From Pelomyxa schiedti (lineage: Eukaryota; Protista; Evosea): DNA of 64,000 nt. The stretch is taken from NCBI GenBank assembly GCA_020536535.1, contig JAHLWZ010000427.1, positions 20,922-84,921 on the forward strand, in the 5' to 3' direction. This document shows, piece after piece, positions 41,268 to 49,043 of this stretch (the first letter of the stretch is position 1; every line of letters starts with the position of its first letter). The translations under genes were made by a program, and so were the position numbers. The notes beneath the pieces were generated by a model. That model searched no databases. It worked only from the letters and a program-made list of their open reading frames with translations, and was not told where the DNA came from.

Positions 41268-41758
41268 AAAAGAACAGAACCCAAAATTTGAGACCCACAA
41301 AGAGTGGAAACTTTTTATCTTGAGTAATTTTTGAGACAAGGAGGTGGGGGTGTTTATAAAGCCTTCCCACGCCAAATGTCTGCTTGTGTATCCAAAGCAC
41401 ATGTAGAACCCTGGGAATATCTCACTAACCCTCTAAAAAAAGGGATGAGGTTTGGCTCTGTGCCACTGCCCAACAAGTGCTTGGAATTTAAGATTAGCTG
41501 CTGACTGAAAAAGGCAACACTCAACACTAGGCCATGGAAACACTCCATACAGAATCGAAGATGATCAACATCAGACTTGCGCGGAAATAGGGCTCCGAAC
41601 AGCCTAAGGCTAAGAGATCGATCTTCTCTGAAAACATTTTGTTTTGATCGTTCCGTGAGCAAAACACCCGCCCAATGTGGAACTACAGTGGCCTCGTTGG
41701 CCTCTGGCCTTGTGTACCAATTCACACCCGCAATAACCGGACCAACTTGCCAGATGCC

Positions 41759-43009
41759 ATGATCAGGAGTGGGATCCGAGCCAGAGACCAACTTACAGCG
41801 CTGCTTGTCGGTTCGCAGTGCGAAAGGTGCGGCGTGTGCTCGCCGGCGAGGAGGGTGTTTGGGCCGGGACTCGCCAGGCAATTGTGGGACACATGGGTCA
41901 TCGGCACACAGAGGACCATAACCATTGTGGTGGAGCTGTCGCCCAACACGCCGCAACCAGGTGGCTTGCTTCTTGCGTGCCTGGAGCCCTACTGCTGCTC
42001 CCTCAGGATTGGTGTCTCTATGCTGCTGTTCGGGATGACAACCGGGCTGTGTGTCACAAATGGAGATGCCGACTGGGTGGATGAGAACGTCGAGGTGACG
42101 GAATCTGACTTGAGTGACATGATACGGGTGACGAATGTGGCAAGGGGTGAGTCCTGTACTTTTGAGCTGTCAGAGGTGGCGGAGCCATTCTCTCGTGCTC
42201 GCCCCTTGTGCATGAATGGAAAGTGGGGTCTTCGTCTCAGAGTGGCGAGAAATCTTCTTACTATCATCAAATTGAACACCAAAAAAAAACAAGAGCCGGT
42301 GGATGCTCCAATTCCAGATAGATACTGTGTGAAGGGTTCAATGAGCTTCAACAAATTGTGCTCCTCGCAAGCACTGATTGTTATGTCCACCAACAGTGGC
42401 CGCGATGCACATTTGCTTGTGATTGACCTGGATAGCACCTACACCACAAGAACTCTGCAGATTGTGAGCTCGACTCGGTGCCAGTTTCCAGAAGGCCACT
42501 TCTTGTCGCACAGTGTGCGGCAGATATGTTTGATGAAGAACAATGCTGGGAAAAACGTGTTCATTGTTGAGACGTCCATGAGCCGTAACAGGGACCGAAC
42601 TGTTTTTGCCGTTCAATTCGATGGCACAGTCACCAGGCTTTCCTCTCACAGCCAAGCAATCCACTCAATGCTCAGTAGTCAAATTAATGGTTCTCTGTTC
42701 TCACTGTTGATTCCTGGGAACCTGCCGGAAAACAGTAAAGAGAATGATTCAATCCTCTGCTGTGATCCCGATAAACTGGAGATATGGGACTGTAATGATA
42801 CTGCAATTTGGGGAAGCCACCAGCAAAACCCAGTGATGGTATACACTGTACCATCACACAAAGGCCATTTATCAGGAGGTGGTTTGATAGTCCTCATCAC
42901 TGGAGGGAACACTTTGCAGGTGACAGAAGCCGTGACAGGCCACATTGTTGCATCCATTGAATGTATTTATCCTCCAAACACCCAGACGTCTTCCTCCTTC
43001 TTGTGGTAA
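41759..43009 (+). CDS. Lineage-specific expanded-family hypothetical protein, intronless, beta-rich C-terminus
   Basis: Uninterrupted ~416-codon ORF. N-terminal motif ARDQLTALLVGSQCERCGVCSPARRV..LARQLWDTWV resembles, from recall, the large hypothetical family of Pelomyxa. Confidence 0.62.
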   Translation: MIRSGIRARDQLTALLVGSQCERCGVCSPARRVFGPGLARQLWDTWVIGTQRTITIVVELSPNTPQPGGLLLACLEPYCCSLRIGVSMLLFGMTTGLCVTNGDADWVDENVEVTESDLSDMIRVTNVARGESCTFELSEVAEPFSRARPLCMNGKWGLRLRVARNLLTIIKLNTKKKQEPVDAPIPDRYCVKGSMSFNKLCSSQALIVMSTNSGRDAHLLVIDLDSTYTTRTLQIVSSTRCQFPEGHFLSHSVRQICLMKNNAGKNVFIVETSMSRNRDRTVFAVQFDGTVTRLSSHSQAIHSMLSSQINGSLFSLLIPGNLPENSKENDSILCCDPDKLEIWDCNDTAIWGSHQQNPVMVYTVPSHKGHLSGGGLIVLITGGNTLQVTEAVTGHIVASIECIYPPNTQTSSSFLW

Positions 43010-43189: not shown

Positions 43190-46100
43190 CTAAATCATGA
43201 GGACAAAAAAAATTCTGGTGAAAATTTTTTCTTTGGATTCAGCTTTCGGCTGGTTATTCAGAAATCGGTGTGTGGATAATACTCCCAGAATCCAGTTCCA
43301 TACCTACAAGTAATTAGAATGAAAAGTTTTCGGTTGCAGTAGCAGGTACTTGCAGTCCATGGTTGGGAACTTAGAGCGAAGTTCCTCTCCACAATCATTG
43401 CCTAGAGTGCAAACAGTGAGCCCATTTATAATGACACTGTGGTCAGATTCCTTTTGCAATAAGATACTGAGAATAGAGTAATAGCACAACATACAGCGGA
43501 TCCTCCATCTAGGACAAAGTCATACATGGTCCCCACAAATAGTGATGTTGGTTTCTCGACATCTATAGGTCGCGTCCACTTCCCGTCAATTAAAACGGGG
43601 TGCCCTGTAGTCAGGCCCACGTTGTTGATGAACACCAAATTGTATTGGGAGTTGACGGCCCGCGTTCGTACTTCAATTACTATGCGTGGTTTCATCTTGA
43701 TCCCTGACATGACATAGTCACCTGGCTGAATATCTTCCACTGCCCTGGGTATCTTGTTAGGCTATGAATTCCAGTTTTATGTCAACTTGGAAGACAAATC
43801 AGATAGAAGTACTTTTCCATCTCCTAAAAAGCAACCCAGTGTTTCTGGTTCCTAAACGAAATCAAACATTGTTGGAGCAGTACAATGTACCTTAAAAAGG
43901 GGGAGCTTATACTTGACAACACCTGGAGTGGAATTTCCCCATGCTATGTGTCTACCAATCGTTTTAATCCCTTCTACTTATGAAAAAAAATAACTACAAG
44001 GACCATGGTTTTACATAGGAGCTTCAATTTCCCACCTCGTTTTTGGAAGTATGACGGAGGACTAGAGTAATTTAGTTGGAGTTAACTTTACCCAGCAAGA
44101 AGTTGTCTCAACCTATCAGTAGGGAAGTGTGGAAGCCAAGCATCATTGAGGCCAGTTATCCTATAGAACTCTCTGGAGACCTTTTGTACGGGTTGATCTA
44201 AGTCACTATTTTTTTTTGGTGGAAACCCTTCCAAGTCTGCACAAATCTTCAGGAAGGAGGTAGGAGAAAACAAAGAGCCAACAAAAATCAGATAACATTG
44301 AACTTGGGCAAGCAGGAAGAAGAGTGATACAAAAGGCATCCCCCAGAACATCACTTTGAAGTCTCCGCCACATTCCAGATGTGACAACTACAGTAATAGA
44401 ACCGTCAAATATTGGTGTAACGGAGTGGAACTGCATGGAGGGAAAAAACAGTTAATAAATATCAAAAGGGACAGTAGCAACTTCTCTGGCAACTGGTGTC
44501 TCTTGGGTTGCCATAATAGTCCAGGAAAGGTTTTTCAAATCCAACCTAAAAGTAGTTTAACAACACCTCACAAGGATGGGAGCATACATAAAAAACTCAC
44601 ACGAGGGATTGCTATTCGTGGAAGATACGAGAACGAATTTCTCATGCTCAGGGAAGAAACACCCTACATTCCCTCTCTGTGGTGTTGGGTGTCTCCCAAC
44701 TGGAGTAATTGCTTCCCATTTTCGTTTGGGTGGAGAAGAATCGAGGTCATAAAGATTCAGTGACCAAACGTCATCAAGTTTGGTATTATCAGCCGCTATC
44801 CCTCCATACACAATCAGTAATCCATTCCTGCACTCGGTTTGTGAACTTCTGGGGAAACAATAAAACCTTGTGACAAATGAATTATGGTGATATCGCGGCG
44901 GGGGTGCCATCTCTGTCAAAATCTCGTGCCATTCTTGGTTTGAGGTGTTGTAGACTAGACACAAGAAACTTTGTTGGTTGTCATTATTTCCGGGAGGAAA
45001 TCACACCATGTAAGGTGTTACAAACACCTAAGGTGAAAGAATTTCCGCCGAACAGGTAAAGATTTCCATGGAAGCTGTGTAAGTGTAAGTTGCCTCTAGG
45101 GTGGCCCAATACATACTATACAAGGGAAGCACCATGCTTTGCTGCAGGTAGACCAGTTGTACAGTTGGCATTCAGGGAGGTCCACAGCAGTGTTGCCATG
45201 TCAAATTGGAAAAAATCATTTGTGTCATCGTTCACAGTGCCACCAAAAAGATAGACTAAACTTCTGTAATTACAAGTTGCTGGGAAACACGAGGGCACCC
45301 ATCGAGACAATTCACTTTTTTGAACAGGAACCGAACTTGTGGGAATCTGCGACGGGGGTAAATCAGGGGGGAGAGCGAGTGCCTCAATAGCAGCGAGAAG
45401 AGGATCATGGACAGTTGGCACTCCTTGCTTCACTATAGCAGAATGGTGTTCAACTTGCCCAGACAACTCAACTTGCGGTATTCCCACATTCTTTTCTCCA
45501 GCAAGTTCCATCAGTTTTCTCTCACGTTCTATTGGCGGAAGCCATTGCTTTAATTTCATATCAAATCGCTGAACACAGTGATTTGCAGTTGAACTCATGC
45601 CACCAAAGAGGAAAAGGGTACCATTAAAGTAATGACACACATGCCCGTAACTGGTAAAATTTAGTGCAATCTGGCAGTAACCATTGCTTACCATGGAAAA
45701 TCTTTATTACTTGAGTTGCCACCAAAAAGAGGAATACAATGCGGAGATTCACACGGTGCAGAAAGGGCAACAGTCGGCGTAGAAGATGGCAATGGAGAAG
45801 GTAGAATGCTACTTAAGAAGCCTGATTTATATTGATACCTAGGAAAAGGTGCAATATGGCACGTACCAAACCACCCAGTAGCCTGAAGAGGCTTTGATTC
45901 TACTCCTTGGGTTAATATTCGAGGATCCACAAGAGATTTTTGTGCTGGTCCCTGAAAGAGGAGCTTTGGAATGGTATGGGGTGCTGCCCTCTTCTGGCGG
46001 ATATTGTACAAGGATTCCTGGATGTGTGCCACAAGAACCTTGATGTTCGTTCCCTTCAAAGCACTAACTTCAACATAACTATCAGCCCCAAAGTCTTCTG

Positions 46101-46827
46101 CATACTATGACATTTCGTTATGCTTTGAACTTCTGTTGTCGAAGATATAACTGTGAGAGTTTTACCTTTCTACAAATAGCTGATGCGATAGATGATTTTG
46201 AACATAAATCTTGCTGCAGCCCTACAAGAATGTAGGCTCTTGGCCTCTTTGAACGTGTTATTTCCTCGTACTTCATTTCAGGGAAGATCTTAGAGACACA
46301 TGAGTGGTGAAACAACTTTCCTGTCTTTGCATACTTCGTTTGCAATTGTCAGTAGGGACTCAGGGTTATTAATATCAAAGCAAAGGAGGCATAGCTCGCA
46401 CAACCGAAGTGAATTCCACTGTTGAATGTCATACGTAAACAGGCAACGGCAACATTCTAACACGGTTAGTAAATGAAACCCAAAAATGGAAAGGAAATTA
46501 CCAAAAAGGTGTGCCTCGTGATCTGCACCATGAGCTGCGTTTTTATGAAAAAAGGAAGAAGAAAAAAAAACAAAAAAAAGCCAAAGAGATTCACCACTAT
46601 AATGGAACGAGGCTGGAGGAGATAGTCTCTTCTTTCCTAGAGCCCAATGACTCATGTTCGGCAGATATCTCTCTAACCTTGTGCATTCAACAACACTACA
46701 AATGGCATCTAGCAACTCGGACTAGAAAATTATCGATTCAGTGTCGTGGTGTTTGGTTTTCATCGCGCACTTTGCCAACTCCACACTGACCACGAATGTA
46801 CACAGTAGGCAAGGTGAGCATAGACAT
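43190..46827 (-). CDS. Divergent Rho-like GTPase - Kelch repeats - F-box - Vint-type Hint domain fusion protein
   Basis: GTPase: VYIRGQCGVGK|SELL (P-loop across a 49-nt intron), LCLLCFDINNPESLL, YILVGLQQDL, YVEVSALKGTNI. Kelch: LFGG/LFLFGG/VYLFGG/YLFGG/IVYGG with PPPRYHH. F-box: LSDFCWLFVFSYLLPEDLCRLGR|VSREFYRITGLNDAW. Hint: TLGCFLGDGK, VEDIQPGDYV, LTTGHPVLIDGKW, MYDFVLD, HSVIINGLTVCTLG. The 3' end is approximate. Confidence 0.8.
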
Positions 46828-46886: not shown

Positions 46887-49043
46887 TTACTTTGAGGGAT
46901 ACAGGAATGAGGATAGATCAGGGTGTGTGGCTAGTGTCTGGACCGCGAATGCAGTTGCTTTGGAAAGATAGACTAATCCTTCAGTGTTGATGTTGAGAAG
47001 AGAATCGCAGTATCTATGATAACAGGGGTCATAACTGCATGGAAAGGGAGTTTGTTAGAGTGACTAATTCGCATTTAGCTTACGGCGTATCAACTAGTCC
47101 ACCAAACATGCTTCTTTCCTCGAAAGTTTTCTTCACATCTTTGTCCATGGTGTGAGTTGGGATCGAATAATCGAAATGTGATTAACTAGTCCCGGCCTCG
47201 GCTCCATTTGATGGTATACCAACTTCAATGAAAGGACCATAATCTGAGCCTCCAAAATCATGTACAACATATCCACCGGCTGTATTATTCAAGTAGCCAC
47301 CAAGAAGGTGCTGTTCTGTAGTTACAGACCAATTTCCTTTCGAGAAAGTTCACCTCTAGGGTAGTACAGCCCTCTTTTACTCTTTCGTCTCCAATAGCAC
47401 TTGATCCACTGTGTAGTCTATTTGCGTAATTTGGGCTTCCCAACATGTCCAAGTTGATATCTGGAGTGTTAAGAAAAGCGGAGAAACAAGTAACTCTCAA
47501 ATCACGAACGAAAGGATATATGCTGCGACGGTGTATGGGTAACTTTGTCTGTTCTACTTGAGGAGTTAAGAAGTAAGGAGAAGAAATCTTTAGTTTGGCT
47601 AAACCTGGATGTAACTCTTAGAGCCTTGTAATCCATTTTCCTCTGCCCCCCAGAAGGCAAATACCACTTTATTGATAAGTTCACGAAATGTTCTATTCCA
47701 GGGAAGATTACCATATTATGTGAGGTTGTGGCAGGCATACTTCGAAGACTTGAAGTGAATTGCCATTTCCAAAAGAGCACTCGCACCACTTTTTGTAATT
47801 ATTATTGGAATCGTAGGCCCTGACGTACCTTCCATTATCGTTGATTCCCGGTCCTTGAGCTCCACCATCCAGATGAGCTCCTACCACAACAGCACGTGAT
47901 GCGTTTCCCTTAGGATAGATAAGCCAAAATAAGCAGGCGATTTCCTACTGTTGTTGTTTCAGCAAGAATATTGGTGGAGGATCCAATCAAGTATTCCGTG
48001 ATTACCTAGAGCAGTGAAAAAAAACCAAATGACAATAGTTACTAACATTTAAGCTCAATAGTATATCACTCTCTTTGGTTAATTGCACACCCACTGAAAA
48101 GGATAGCCCAAAAACTGGAATTGAACAACCTCCAGTGGAGACGTTATATGGGCCACTCTCTGTATCCGAATTGTAAATCAACACGGCACTTGCGGAATTT
48201 CTGAAATTCAGATTAGATGAAGATAACAACTGGCCTGCTACTGCAGTGCTAGAGTAAGCTTTTCATTGATGGTACAATTCCCTCGGTAAATAAGGGCAAT
48301 ATTTCCTACAGAGAAACCTGAACTCTGTTACTCACGGTTCTATGCAAAGATACACCTACAGACCTGCGTAATCTTGTTGACAGCATCCCAGGTTTTGGAT
48401 TACGCTGAGTGGAGCAGTGAAATTCCCACTCGCACTGAACTTGAGTACAGTAAAGTCATCCACAAACGAGAATGTTATAGGGGTTGGTTGCACTTCACTC
48501 AGTTCTGGTGTGCCAATAACCGTCCAGTACGAGAAGGAGAATGTCTGTGTGCTGATTGCCAATCCAGAATCTTCCAGTTTTTTCATAACGTAGCTCATAG
48601 ATTCATTGAAGCTATTGGAACAGAATCAGGGAAAAAACCCTTGAATACAGCTGTATTCAAACCCTAAAGTGAATGAAGCACGGGTTCCGCCAGTGGAGTC
48701 AGCAATTTCCTGCAGTTTTTCCAAGTGATTCCACAATCCCTCGAGTTCTATTGTATCCACAAGGTCATGTTTGCTGCGGTTTTGTCGAACAAACAGTGCT
48801 GCACCAAAACGTCAATGACGCCTAGTAACTGGGGAGAAAACAAAATAAAATAAACTTCTCACCAGTTGCAGCACAGAGTATAACAATAGTTACCCCAACT
48901 GCTGCAACCACAGTTAGAATCAAACTGTTTCTTAGCATTCGATTGCATTTTGGTTTGCCTGTGCACCCACAATGGCGGTCTGGCTGTACGCTCTGCGAGG
49001 TGCTAGTGCCCACTGACAATTCCTCGTACTTCATTGCAGCCAT
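46887..49043 (-). CDS. M28A-family aminopeptidase with PA domain, N-terminal type II membrane anchor
   Basis: TM LILTVVAAVGVTIVILCAA. LWNHLEKLQEIADSTGGTRA. PA domain NLGC..GNIALIYRGNC..AVLIYN. Metal-ligand motifs GAHLD, GPGINDNGS, FWGAEENG, NLDMLGSPNY, SDYGPF, YDPCYHRYCD. Confidence 0.9.

Follow-up and report, generated by a model that had tools for sequence, protein, structure and literature searches.

Does a single gene of the anaerobic amoeba Pelomyxa schiedti join a GTPase-like domain, a Kelch propeller and an F-box to a Vint-type Hint domain, and, if so, what would a Hint domain do at the end of a ubiquitin-ligase adaptor? The question is raised by a locus in a 64,000-nucleotide stretch of contig JAHLWZ010000427.1 (positions 20,922 to 84,921 of the forward strand; assembly GCA_020536535.1), which we call the window and whose own positions are used for all coordinates below. 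A sequence-only reading of the window had proposed such a fusion, linked by one chain of short GT-AG introns. We found that the locus is indeed one intact gene: on the minus strand, from 46827 to 43258, 20 exons and 19 GT-AG introns of 39-61 nt yield an 894-aa open reading frame (ORF) without an internal stop. The encoded protein begins with a degenerate GTPase-like domain, plausibly of Rho/Rac origin, continues with a Kelch propeller of six blades and an F-box, and ends in a Hint domain of the Vint type, which a conserved 49-aa linker separates from the F-box. Judging from the sequence, we think it reasonably probable that this protein is the precursor of a substrate receptor of the SCF (Skp1-cullin-F-box) type, and that the Vint domain would cleave the Gly747-Cys748 bond via a thioester, releasing the receptor.

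The splice model was read from the minus strand and checked against GenBank proteins and against a paralogous locus, L001 (JAHLWZ010000590.1, 4046-7672). A search of the whole database with HMMER, using one Hint exon as the query, found the GenBank protein of the locus at 100% identity: KAH3762813.1 (Pelo_5355, a hypothetical protein of P. schiedti, 880 aa; label P0001), in which the F-box is already joined to the Hint domain. Over the last 726 aa our 20-exon model is identical to it. The 5' end of the GenBank model is wrong, however; it begins inside an upstream gene and skips the GTPase exons, so that the database protein hides the GTPase domain. The upstream gene (minus strand, 46887-47500) matches Peptidase_M28 and has its own stop codon, TAA at 46889-46887, 59 nt before the ATG at 46827.

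The GTPase exons were missed when the N-termini of paralogs were aligned to the window with tblastn, because they are too divergent. We therefore placed these exons by reading the sequence, and then checked them using shared intron positions and a family profile. Exon 1, which encodes M...G-x-C-x-x-G-K and is followed by a phase-0 intron, is kept in the sister locus L001. Introns 1-5 fall in matching alignment columns in the paralogs P0003 and P0004 (three identical, two within five columns), with the same phases, L001 agrees with these paralogs in the placement of exon 1 and introns 1-5, and a profile built from the GTPase domains of seven paralogs scores the window domain at 43.6 bits (E 1.4e-9 at Z=1e6). 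Over the whole gene, exact exon maps show that 17 intron positions and phases, including that of the linker intron, are common to the window and these two distant paralogs.

The sequence-only reading had named a condition under which the fusion would fail: the mRNA might end at a TAA at 44090-44088, with the Hint exons transcribed separately or not at all. The locus would then be an artefact, that is, a GTPase-Kelch-F-box gene ending at this codon beside a separate Hint gene, or else a decaying pseudogene. Such a reading draws on the demonstrable error at the 5' end of the GenBank model, on the splitting of the close paralog L001 into two genes by its annotators, and on the fact that no transcript of the window copy was found. 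Against it, the TAA lies inside intron 14, and is thus not the end of the protein. The F-box exon ends at 44113, with the donor GTTGAG at 44112, and the next exon comprises 47 nt (44061-44015). Both the donor and the CTCTAG acceptor of intron 14 are conserved in L001, while the interior of the intron has diverged and is 45 nt long there (separate 5-nt and 1-nt gaps). The GenBank models use this same splice at both loci. In addition, our reading of the sequence bears out the claim that the Hint exons lack a separate start codon, and a Hint domain needs an N-terminal partner.

An alternative join was considered and rejected. A donor at 44092 (GG|gtaaag) would remove a 30-nt intron and lead in frame into a microexon encoding GPPSYFQKR-E. 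The GenBank models and L001 rule this path out, showing the donor GTTGAG at 44112 and an exon continuing to ...GGKLKLLW, a stretch that carries the family-wide linker motif. At the protein level the linker exons are conserved throughout the paralogs, and every full-length one contains [KN]L[KR]xx[FYW] as well as W-x-N-[PS]-[ST]-P-x-V. Relative to L001, exon 15 differs by coding indels of 9 nt in all, so the reading frame is kept. Intron 15, which separates the two linker exons, has a position and phase found throughout the family (column 782, phase 1).

L001 itself provides a further check on the gene structure. In this paralog, which is 69% identical, the annotation recognises two genes, one for a Ras+Kelch protein of 458 aa and one, Pelo_7451, for a protein of 399 aa. 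When the window exons were projected onto it, one spliced ORF with a single terminal stop resulted, and all 16 of the 16 introns compared were GT..AG introns in the same places. The annotated start of L001 is about 200 nt too far downstream, the true one being MSWFPNVHICGECQLGK.

Family members also span the join in RNA. We used Logan contigs from SRR23919873 and SRR23919877, which are single-cell transcriptome reads of P. schiedti (ISME J 2023, PMC10579272), and which contain three further paralogs (L003, L008 and L009). In L003, the last Kelch blade, the F-box, the linker, the Vint domain and the stop codon are found on one RNA contig from which five family introns are already absent; subtracting one 44-nt GT-AG intron leaves a continuous ORF of 282 aa. 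L008 is similar, having lost six introns but kept a 40-nt linker intron (identified by eye), and L009 is a less processed RNA contig that carries a frameshift. Because all three run from the Kelch/F-box region into the Vint domain, F-box and Vint are present on one RNA in the family.

At least 12 annotated proteins of P. schiedti have the GTPase-Kelch-F-box-Vint layout: P0001, P0068 (counted with the upstream annotated gene), P0003, P0072, P0073, P0004, P0074, P0075, P0007, P0009, P0040 and P0056. One of these, P0072 (1,075 aa), has a Fic-domain region (PF02661) before a truncated GTPase-Kelch-F-box-Vint body; the model is probably a further case of merged genes, though a real fusion is possible. 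The comparison with the 69%-identical paralog L001 indicates that the window gene is under purifying selection. The ratio of nonsynonymous to synonymous substitution rates (dN/dS) is 0.17 for the GTPase part, 0.21 for Kelch, 0.22 for the F-box, 0.37 for the linker and 0.27 for Vint, and reaches 0.59 in the poorly conserved spacer between GTPase and Kelch. At the amino acid level Vint is the most conserved part (83% identity). A decaying pseudogene would not be expected to keep its ORF open through 20 exons at dN/dS values far below 1, and we regard the artefact or two-gene reading as already largely refuted and very improbable. The synonymous rate itself varies along the gene: dS relative to L001 is 0.32 in the Vint exons (window 43851-43258 against L001:7056-7672), 0.69 in Kelch and 1.0 in the GTPase part. 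The introns flanking the Vint exons are as diverged as those elsewhere, so simple gene conversion does not explain the low value for Vint. The coordinates of the gene and its features are collected in Table 1.

Table 1. Features of the Pelo_5355 locus, in window coordinates
Feature	Position	Strand	Description
Whole coding region	43258..46827	-	894 codons plus stop; start ATG 46827
Exons 1-5	46827-46771, 46721-46595, 46534-46502, 46456-46335, 46288-46166	-	
Exons 6-10	46104-45867, 45821-45692, 45650-45117, 45074-45007, 44954-44867	-	
Exons 11-15	44827-44588, 44545-44482, 44430-44227, 44180-44113, 44061-44015	-	
Exons 16-20	43970-43891, 43851-43787, 43744-43495, 43450-43350, 43303-43258	-	
Degenerate GTPase-like domain, plausibly Rho/Rac-derived	46012..46806	-	residues ~8-185, exons 1-6
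Six-blade Kelch beta-propeller	44320..45741	-	residues ~261-645; ~65-aa disordered insert between blades 1 and 2
F-box	44115..44298	-	residues ~653-698, split by intron 13 (44226-44181)
Intron 14	44062..44112	-	GTTGAG..CTCTAG, 51 nt; contains TAA 44090-44088
Linker exons 15 and 16	43891..44061	-	encode SPPSYFQKRGGKLKLLW / IKTIGRHIAWGNSTPGVVKYKLPLFK; intron 15 between them (44014-43971)
Vint-type Hint domain	43261..43833	-	residues 748-894, exons 17-20
Cys1 codon (Cys748, after Gly747)	43831..43833	-	direct reading
Block B, T808-T-G-H811, then Pro	43600..43611	-	alignment of 40 Vint domains
Stop codon TGA	43258..43260	-	direct reading

Beyond the stop codon, an uninterrupted ORF of 444 aa on the plus strand (41675-43009) converges on the 3' end of the gene; it has no Pfam match.

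We examined the Hint domain for the residues and the fold on which cleavage would depend. The Pfam Vint profile (PF14623) matches P0001 at 4.9e-19, with 69.2 bits against a cut-off of 27, and a single exon (43743-43429) suffices for a match at 3e-10. The catalytic positions named by the sequence-only reading were largely upheld. Cys1 follows a Gly as described, and Cys is present in 38 of the 38 aligned Vint domains that cover the column. Block B retains its TxxH motif: His811 and Pro812, as well as one Trp, are invariant among 40 aligned Vint domains, and the Thr is kept in at least 90%. Downstream of block B are found D849-H850-S and a C-T-L-G motif. Cys1, TxxH and the His of DHS are retained in every paralog and in distant Vint proteins. 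The Asp of MYDFV, which had been proposed as the block-F catalytic residue, is present in the window copy but is Asn in most paralogs, and thus is not a conserved catalytic residue.

The predicted structure leads to the same family. In an AlphaFold2 model of residues 639-894 (P0001:625-880), the predicted local distance difference test score (pLDDT) is about 96 over the Hint part, and the best Foldseek match is 8r2c, the crystal structure of a Tetrahymena Vint domain (E 2.2e-9; root-mean-square deviation 2.0 A over 127 columns; 26% identity), followed by BIL2 domains, inteins and the Hedgehog HhC domain. A phmmer search also reaches 8r2c (2.3e-5), with block B aligned to its T-P-K-H-P. We characterised 8r2c and the BUBL/BIL entries from their PDB titles. 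A helical tail of about 35 residues (CTLGxDCG...YGTGxW), predicted with a pLDDT of about 95, packs on the Hint core. The Hint fold for which a check had been advised is thus recovered by both profile and structure.

Other Hint classes fit less well. Inteins have a C-terminal Asn and a downstream extein nucleophile; here the protein stops about 35 residues beyond the Hint core in a variable tail, with no conserved terminal Asn, as the sequence-only reading had observed, and no C-extein, which argues for a cleavage-type Hint domain and not an intein. The Pfam Hint profile (PF01079), which represents the Hog class, gives only 16.2 bits against a cut-off of 29.7, and there is no matching C-terminal sterol-recognition region. 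Finally, Pfam finds no VWA or Vwaint domain in P0001 or in any Kelch-F-box-Vint paralog.

If the Vint domain is active, it would act once, in cis. Cys748 would attack the carbonyl of Gly747 in an N-to-S acyl shift, aided by T808 and H811, and the thioester would then be resolved by water or another nucleophile. The products would be a GTPase-Kelch-F-box receptor of about 747 residues and a Vint fragment of about 147 residues, and the cleavage would constitute a maturation or regulatory step for a ligase adaptor. The residues for the first step, at the Gly747-Cys748 junction and in the TxxH motif, are intact in the window copy, and Cys1 and TxxH are conserved across the family. We infer the cleavage, the binding of Skp1 and the role of the GTPase-like domain.

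Several observations weigh against this reading. We know of no experimental cleavage in any member of the GTPase-Kelch-F-box-Vint family. Database searches found no transcript-derived protein of this exact gene copy. The Vint profile is matched at positions 1-119 of 166 only, the family having its own short C-terminal tail instead; the chemistry could therefore differ. Nor is the position before Cys1 fixed: family members have G, E, A or S there. The F-box of the window copy scores barely above the Pfam cut-off, and the Pro normally found in its L-P motif is missing. Finally, the linker intron is unspliced in three of the three paralog RNA contigs, and if it were retained most copies would end before Vint. 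Its counterpart is found in L003 (319-362), in L008 (610-649) and in L009, even though 4-6 neighbouring introns have been removed. In the window gene, retention of intron 15 would stop translation 13 codons later and give a Vint-less protein. The stronger proposition, that retention invariably yields a protein without Vint, was rejected, since P0004 has an open intron of 48 nt that is read through. The retained linker intron may simply be slow to splice, or its retention may be a regulated means of selecting between isoforms.

Some of the same observations bear on a different proposal, in which the Vint domain has lost its cleavage activity and, as a pseudo-enzyme, acts at the C-terminus of the full-length protein as a folded module for interaction or regulation. 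In its favour, the protein already contains one clearly degenerated domain, its GTPase; the family Vint is a truncated subtype; and no member of the family is known to be processed. A dead Vint domain is hard to square, however, with the fact that neither any paralog nor the distant Vint proteins have lost Cys1, TxxH or the DHS His. It would not be expected to keep Cys1 in 38 of 38 sequences, nor to be encoded by the most constrained exons of the gene. We consider a non-cleaving Vint unlikely.

The sequence-only reading had gone further, proposing that the thioester is transferred to a specific lipid or protein amine, in the manner of Hedgehog, so that the adaptor module would be anchored or conjugated without E1 or E2. 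Hint chemistry permits such a transfer, and the modification of Hedgehog by cholesterol through its Hint domain is established. Among structural neighbours of the Hint domain, BIL2 domains from the BUBL locus of Tetrahymena rank second; in the model, the conserved helical tail lies against the Hint core at the place taken in Hedgehog by the sterol-recognition region; and a Gly precedes Cys1 in the window copy and in 7 of the 14 aligned Kelch-F-box-Vint sequences. On the other hand, nothing in the sequence identifies an acceptor nucleophile. The tail is short, unlike both the Hedgehog sterol-recognition region and the canonical Vint C-terminus (Vint positions 120-166 are unmatched), Glu, Ala or Ser precedes Cys1 in other paralogs, and the proposed block-F Asp is not conserved. 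Transfer to a specific acceptor appears to us quite unlikely.

Comparison with known systems helps to place the domain. Like the VWA-Vint proteins, Pelo_5355 has a Hint domain of the same subtype (PF14623, 8r2c) with Cys1 and TxxH, located at the C-terminus without a C-extein, predicted to undergo intracellular processing and joined to a ubiquitin-ligase module, which is a U-box there and an F-box here. Unlike them, it lacks VWA and Vwaint, matches about 119 of the 166 Vint positions, has a family-specific helical tail and is partnered by GTPase, Kelch and F-box domains. With the Hedgehog HhC/Hog domains (1at0, 6tyy) it shares the Hint fold, TxxH and a Gly-Cys-Phe junction, as well as, by prediction, N-terminal cleavage only, with the upstream protein released through a thioester. 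It differs from Hedgehog in having neither a sterol-recognition region nor a signal peptide, and its upstream part is a cytosolic ligase adaptor. The ciliate BUBL/BIL2 domains (6tmm, 6y75) resemble it in structure and in that the Hint domain is encoded beside modules of the ubiquitin system; however, no ubiquitin-like domain precedes the Hint domain of Pelo_5355, and identity is only about 13%.

The part that cleavage would release has the composition of a substrate receptor. An F-box protein combines an F-box with a separate substrate-binding domain, and Pelo_5355 has both, namely an F-box above the Pfam cut-off and a Kelch propeller. The F-box, presumed to be the Skp1-binding part, matches the Pfam F-box-like profile PF12937 at 6.9e-6 (26.2 bits against a cut-off of 24.3; 29.7-40.2 bits in paralogs) and forms a helical bundle in the AlphaFold2 model (pLDDT 75-88). 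Pfam analysis of the locus protein bears out the unusual domain order described earlier, in which the F-box follows the propeller and is itself followed by Vint.

The propeller, presumed to be the substrate-binding part, had been described as about five Kelch repeats; both the repeat pattern and the AlphaFold2 model (predicted template modelling score, pTM, 0.74) instead give six blades, each four-stranded in the model. On P0001, Pfam reports Kelch_KLHDC2_KLHL20_DRC7 (6.4e-37) and Kelch_1 (1.1e-21). In a Foldseek search with the propeller, ranks 1-6 are all taken by complexes of the LZTR1 Kelch domain with MRAS, KRAS or RIT1 (9mez, 9mf0, 9mey), followed by ESP, KLHDC3 and KLHDC2, with FBXO42 also among the structural matches. 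LZTR1 is likewise the best PDB sequence match of the family profile (8.8e-48), while Pfam ranks the KLHDC2/KLHL20/DRC7 profile above that of LZTR1.

LZTR1 is a CUL3 adaptor whose N-terminal Kelch domain binds RAS GTPases and is followed by BTB/BACK domains that bind the cullin (PMC11420953). It is thus the closest solved propeller by fold and by profile, and its arrangement (Kelch-BTB/BACK-BTB/BACK) also places the propeller first and the cullin-adaptor module second; this common order would explain the apparently reversed position of the F-box. Its propeller binds Ras-family GTPases, and in Pelo_5355 a Ras-superfamily domain is fused before the propeller. The two proteins differ in that an F-box (the Cul1 route) replaces BTB/BACK (the Cul3 route), Pelo_5355 having no BTB/BACK domain. 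The similarity is one of resemblance and not of membership. By analogy, the fused Ras-superfamily domain and the LZTR1-like propeller suggest that GTPase and propeller may pair within one molecule. Plant F-box-Kelch (FBK) proteins and FBXO42 also combine an F-box with a Kelch propeller as SCF substrate receptors, but in them the F-box precedes the propeller and there is no GTPase or Hint domain. RhoBTB proteins, which are also found in Amoebozoa, have an atypical Rho GTPase N-terminal to a BTB cullin-RING adaptor module; compared with Pelo_5355, they have BTB rather than an F-box and contain neither Kelch nor Hint.

The GTPase-like domain had been called Rho-like, a description that holds for its homology and not for its function. 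The family profile score and the shared introns support a G-domain origin. The paralog P0003 matches Pfam Ras at 7.5e-19, and P0040 retains ...LCFSL...WFPEVW..., with Rac1 and then RhoA as its best solved relatives; Rho/Rac ancestry is therefore plausible on sequence grounds. In the window copy, G1 (the P-loop, GQCGVGKS; codons 46791-46719, across intron 1) is intact and the SAL of G5 is kept. However, the DxxG of G3 has become YDIQQ, losing its Gly, and the [NT]KxD of G4 has become GLQQD, so that of the G1, G3 and G4 set only G1 is intact. These changes make normal GTP binding doubtful, and the domain is probably nucleotide-impaired. The sister copy in L001 is degenerate in the same way.

A more speculative scheme would combine these elements into a self-regulating E3 receptor. 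In it, the LZTR1-like propeller would be occupied by the pseudo-GTPase, which would serve as an internal ligand or pseudosubstrate. Cleavage by Vint would then have one of two outcomes: the receptor would be linked covalently to a lipid or protein via the newly formed C-terminal Gly, or a tail ending in Gly would be exposed, such as KLHDC-type propellers recognise as a C-degron, permitting self-docking or self-destruction. Slow splicing of the linker intron would produce Vint-bearing and Vint-less isoforms. We judge the scheme as a whole improbable.

The Vint domain was defined as the Hint domain of VWA-Vwaint-Vint proteins, some of which have a U-box, and intracellular processing was predicted for them (Burglin 2008, PMC2362128). 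The earlier statement that Vint normally follows vWA domains is therefore correct, but it left out the frequent U-box, which occurs in 6 of the 10 canonical VWA-Vint proteins among our matches; VWA and Vwaint are present in the canonical matches P0011, P0022, P0046 and others. Because many canonical Vint proteins have a U-box, the association of Vint with E3 ligases has in itself a precedent. Further Vint proteins of P. schiedti include P0025 (Pelo_15446), in which an F-box is followed by Vint, and P0005, with the layout WWE-F-box-like-Vint. The latter layout is also found in a Trinity transcript of Mastigella eilhardi (P0008). Two environmental contigs, L004 and L005 (Joint Genome Institute, JGI, 3300030738 and 3300030743), encode P0082, a 376-aa LIM-F-box-Vint protein with an intact Cys1, whose source is an AT-rich eukaryote outside Pelomyxa. 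Vint is thus found attached to ubiquitin-ligase modules again and again. Taken together with the Kelch-F-box-Vint family, the canonical U-box, WWE/F-box-like and LIM/F-box Vint proteins suggest that Vint chemistry is tied generally to ubiquitin ligases. Among the database matches, the full GTPase-Kelch-F-box-Vint combination was seen in P. schiedti only. Full-text literature searches yielded no description of an F-box-Hint fusion and no paper describing the whole combination, which had not been recognised as a described architecture in the sequence-only reading either.

The searches also returned a bacterial protein of a different kind. In P0002 (WP_261888069.1, a VCBS-domain protein of 3,495 aa from Vibrio rhizosphaerae), 23 stretches match residues 25-69 of the Hint-exon query (E 1e-39), and these appear to be copies of a repeated unit similar to the block-B region of Hint domains.

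Hint domains release or ligate signalling proteins, as in Hedgehog, and splice proteins, as in inteins; as Vint they follow VWA domains. In the P. schiedti family, which numbers a dozen or more genes and is under purifying selection, Vint is attached to an entire substrate receptor of the cullin-RING type. For the locus itself, the corrected gene model, the intronic position of the TAA, the family-wide intron map and the recurrent retention of the linker intron are new, as are the similarity to LZTR1 and the F-box-Vint proteins outside Pelomyxa. A poorly understood class of Hint domain thereby gains a defined and tractable upstream partner, and the GTPase-like domain fused to an LZTR1-like propeller could serve as a natural model of how such propellers recognise small GTPases. 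If cleavage or ligation proves true, it would represent a new way to mature, anchor or switch off an E3 adaptor, and possibly a tool for protein engineering.

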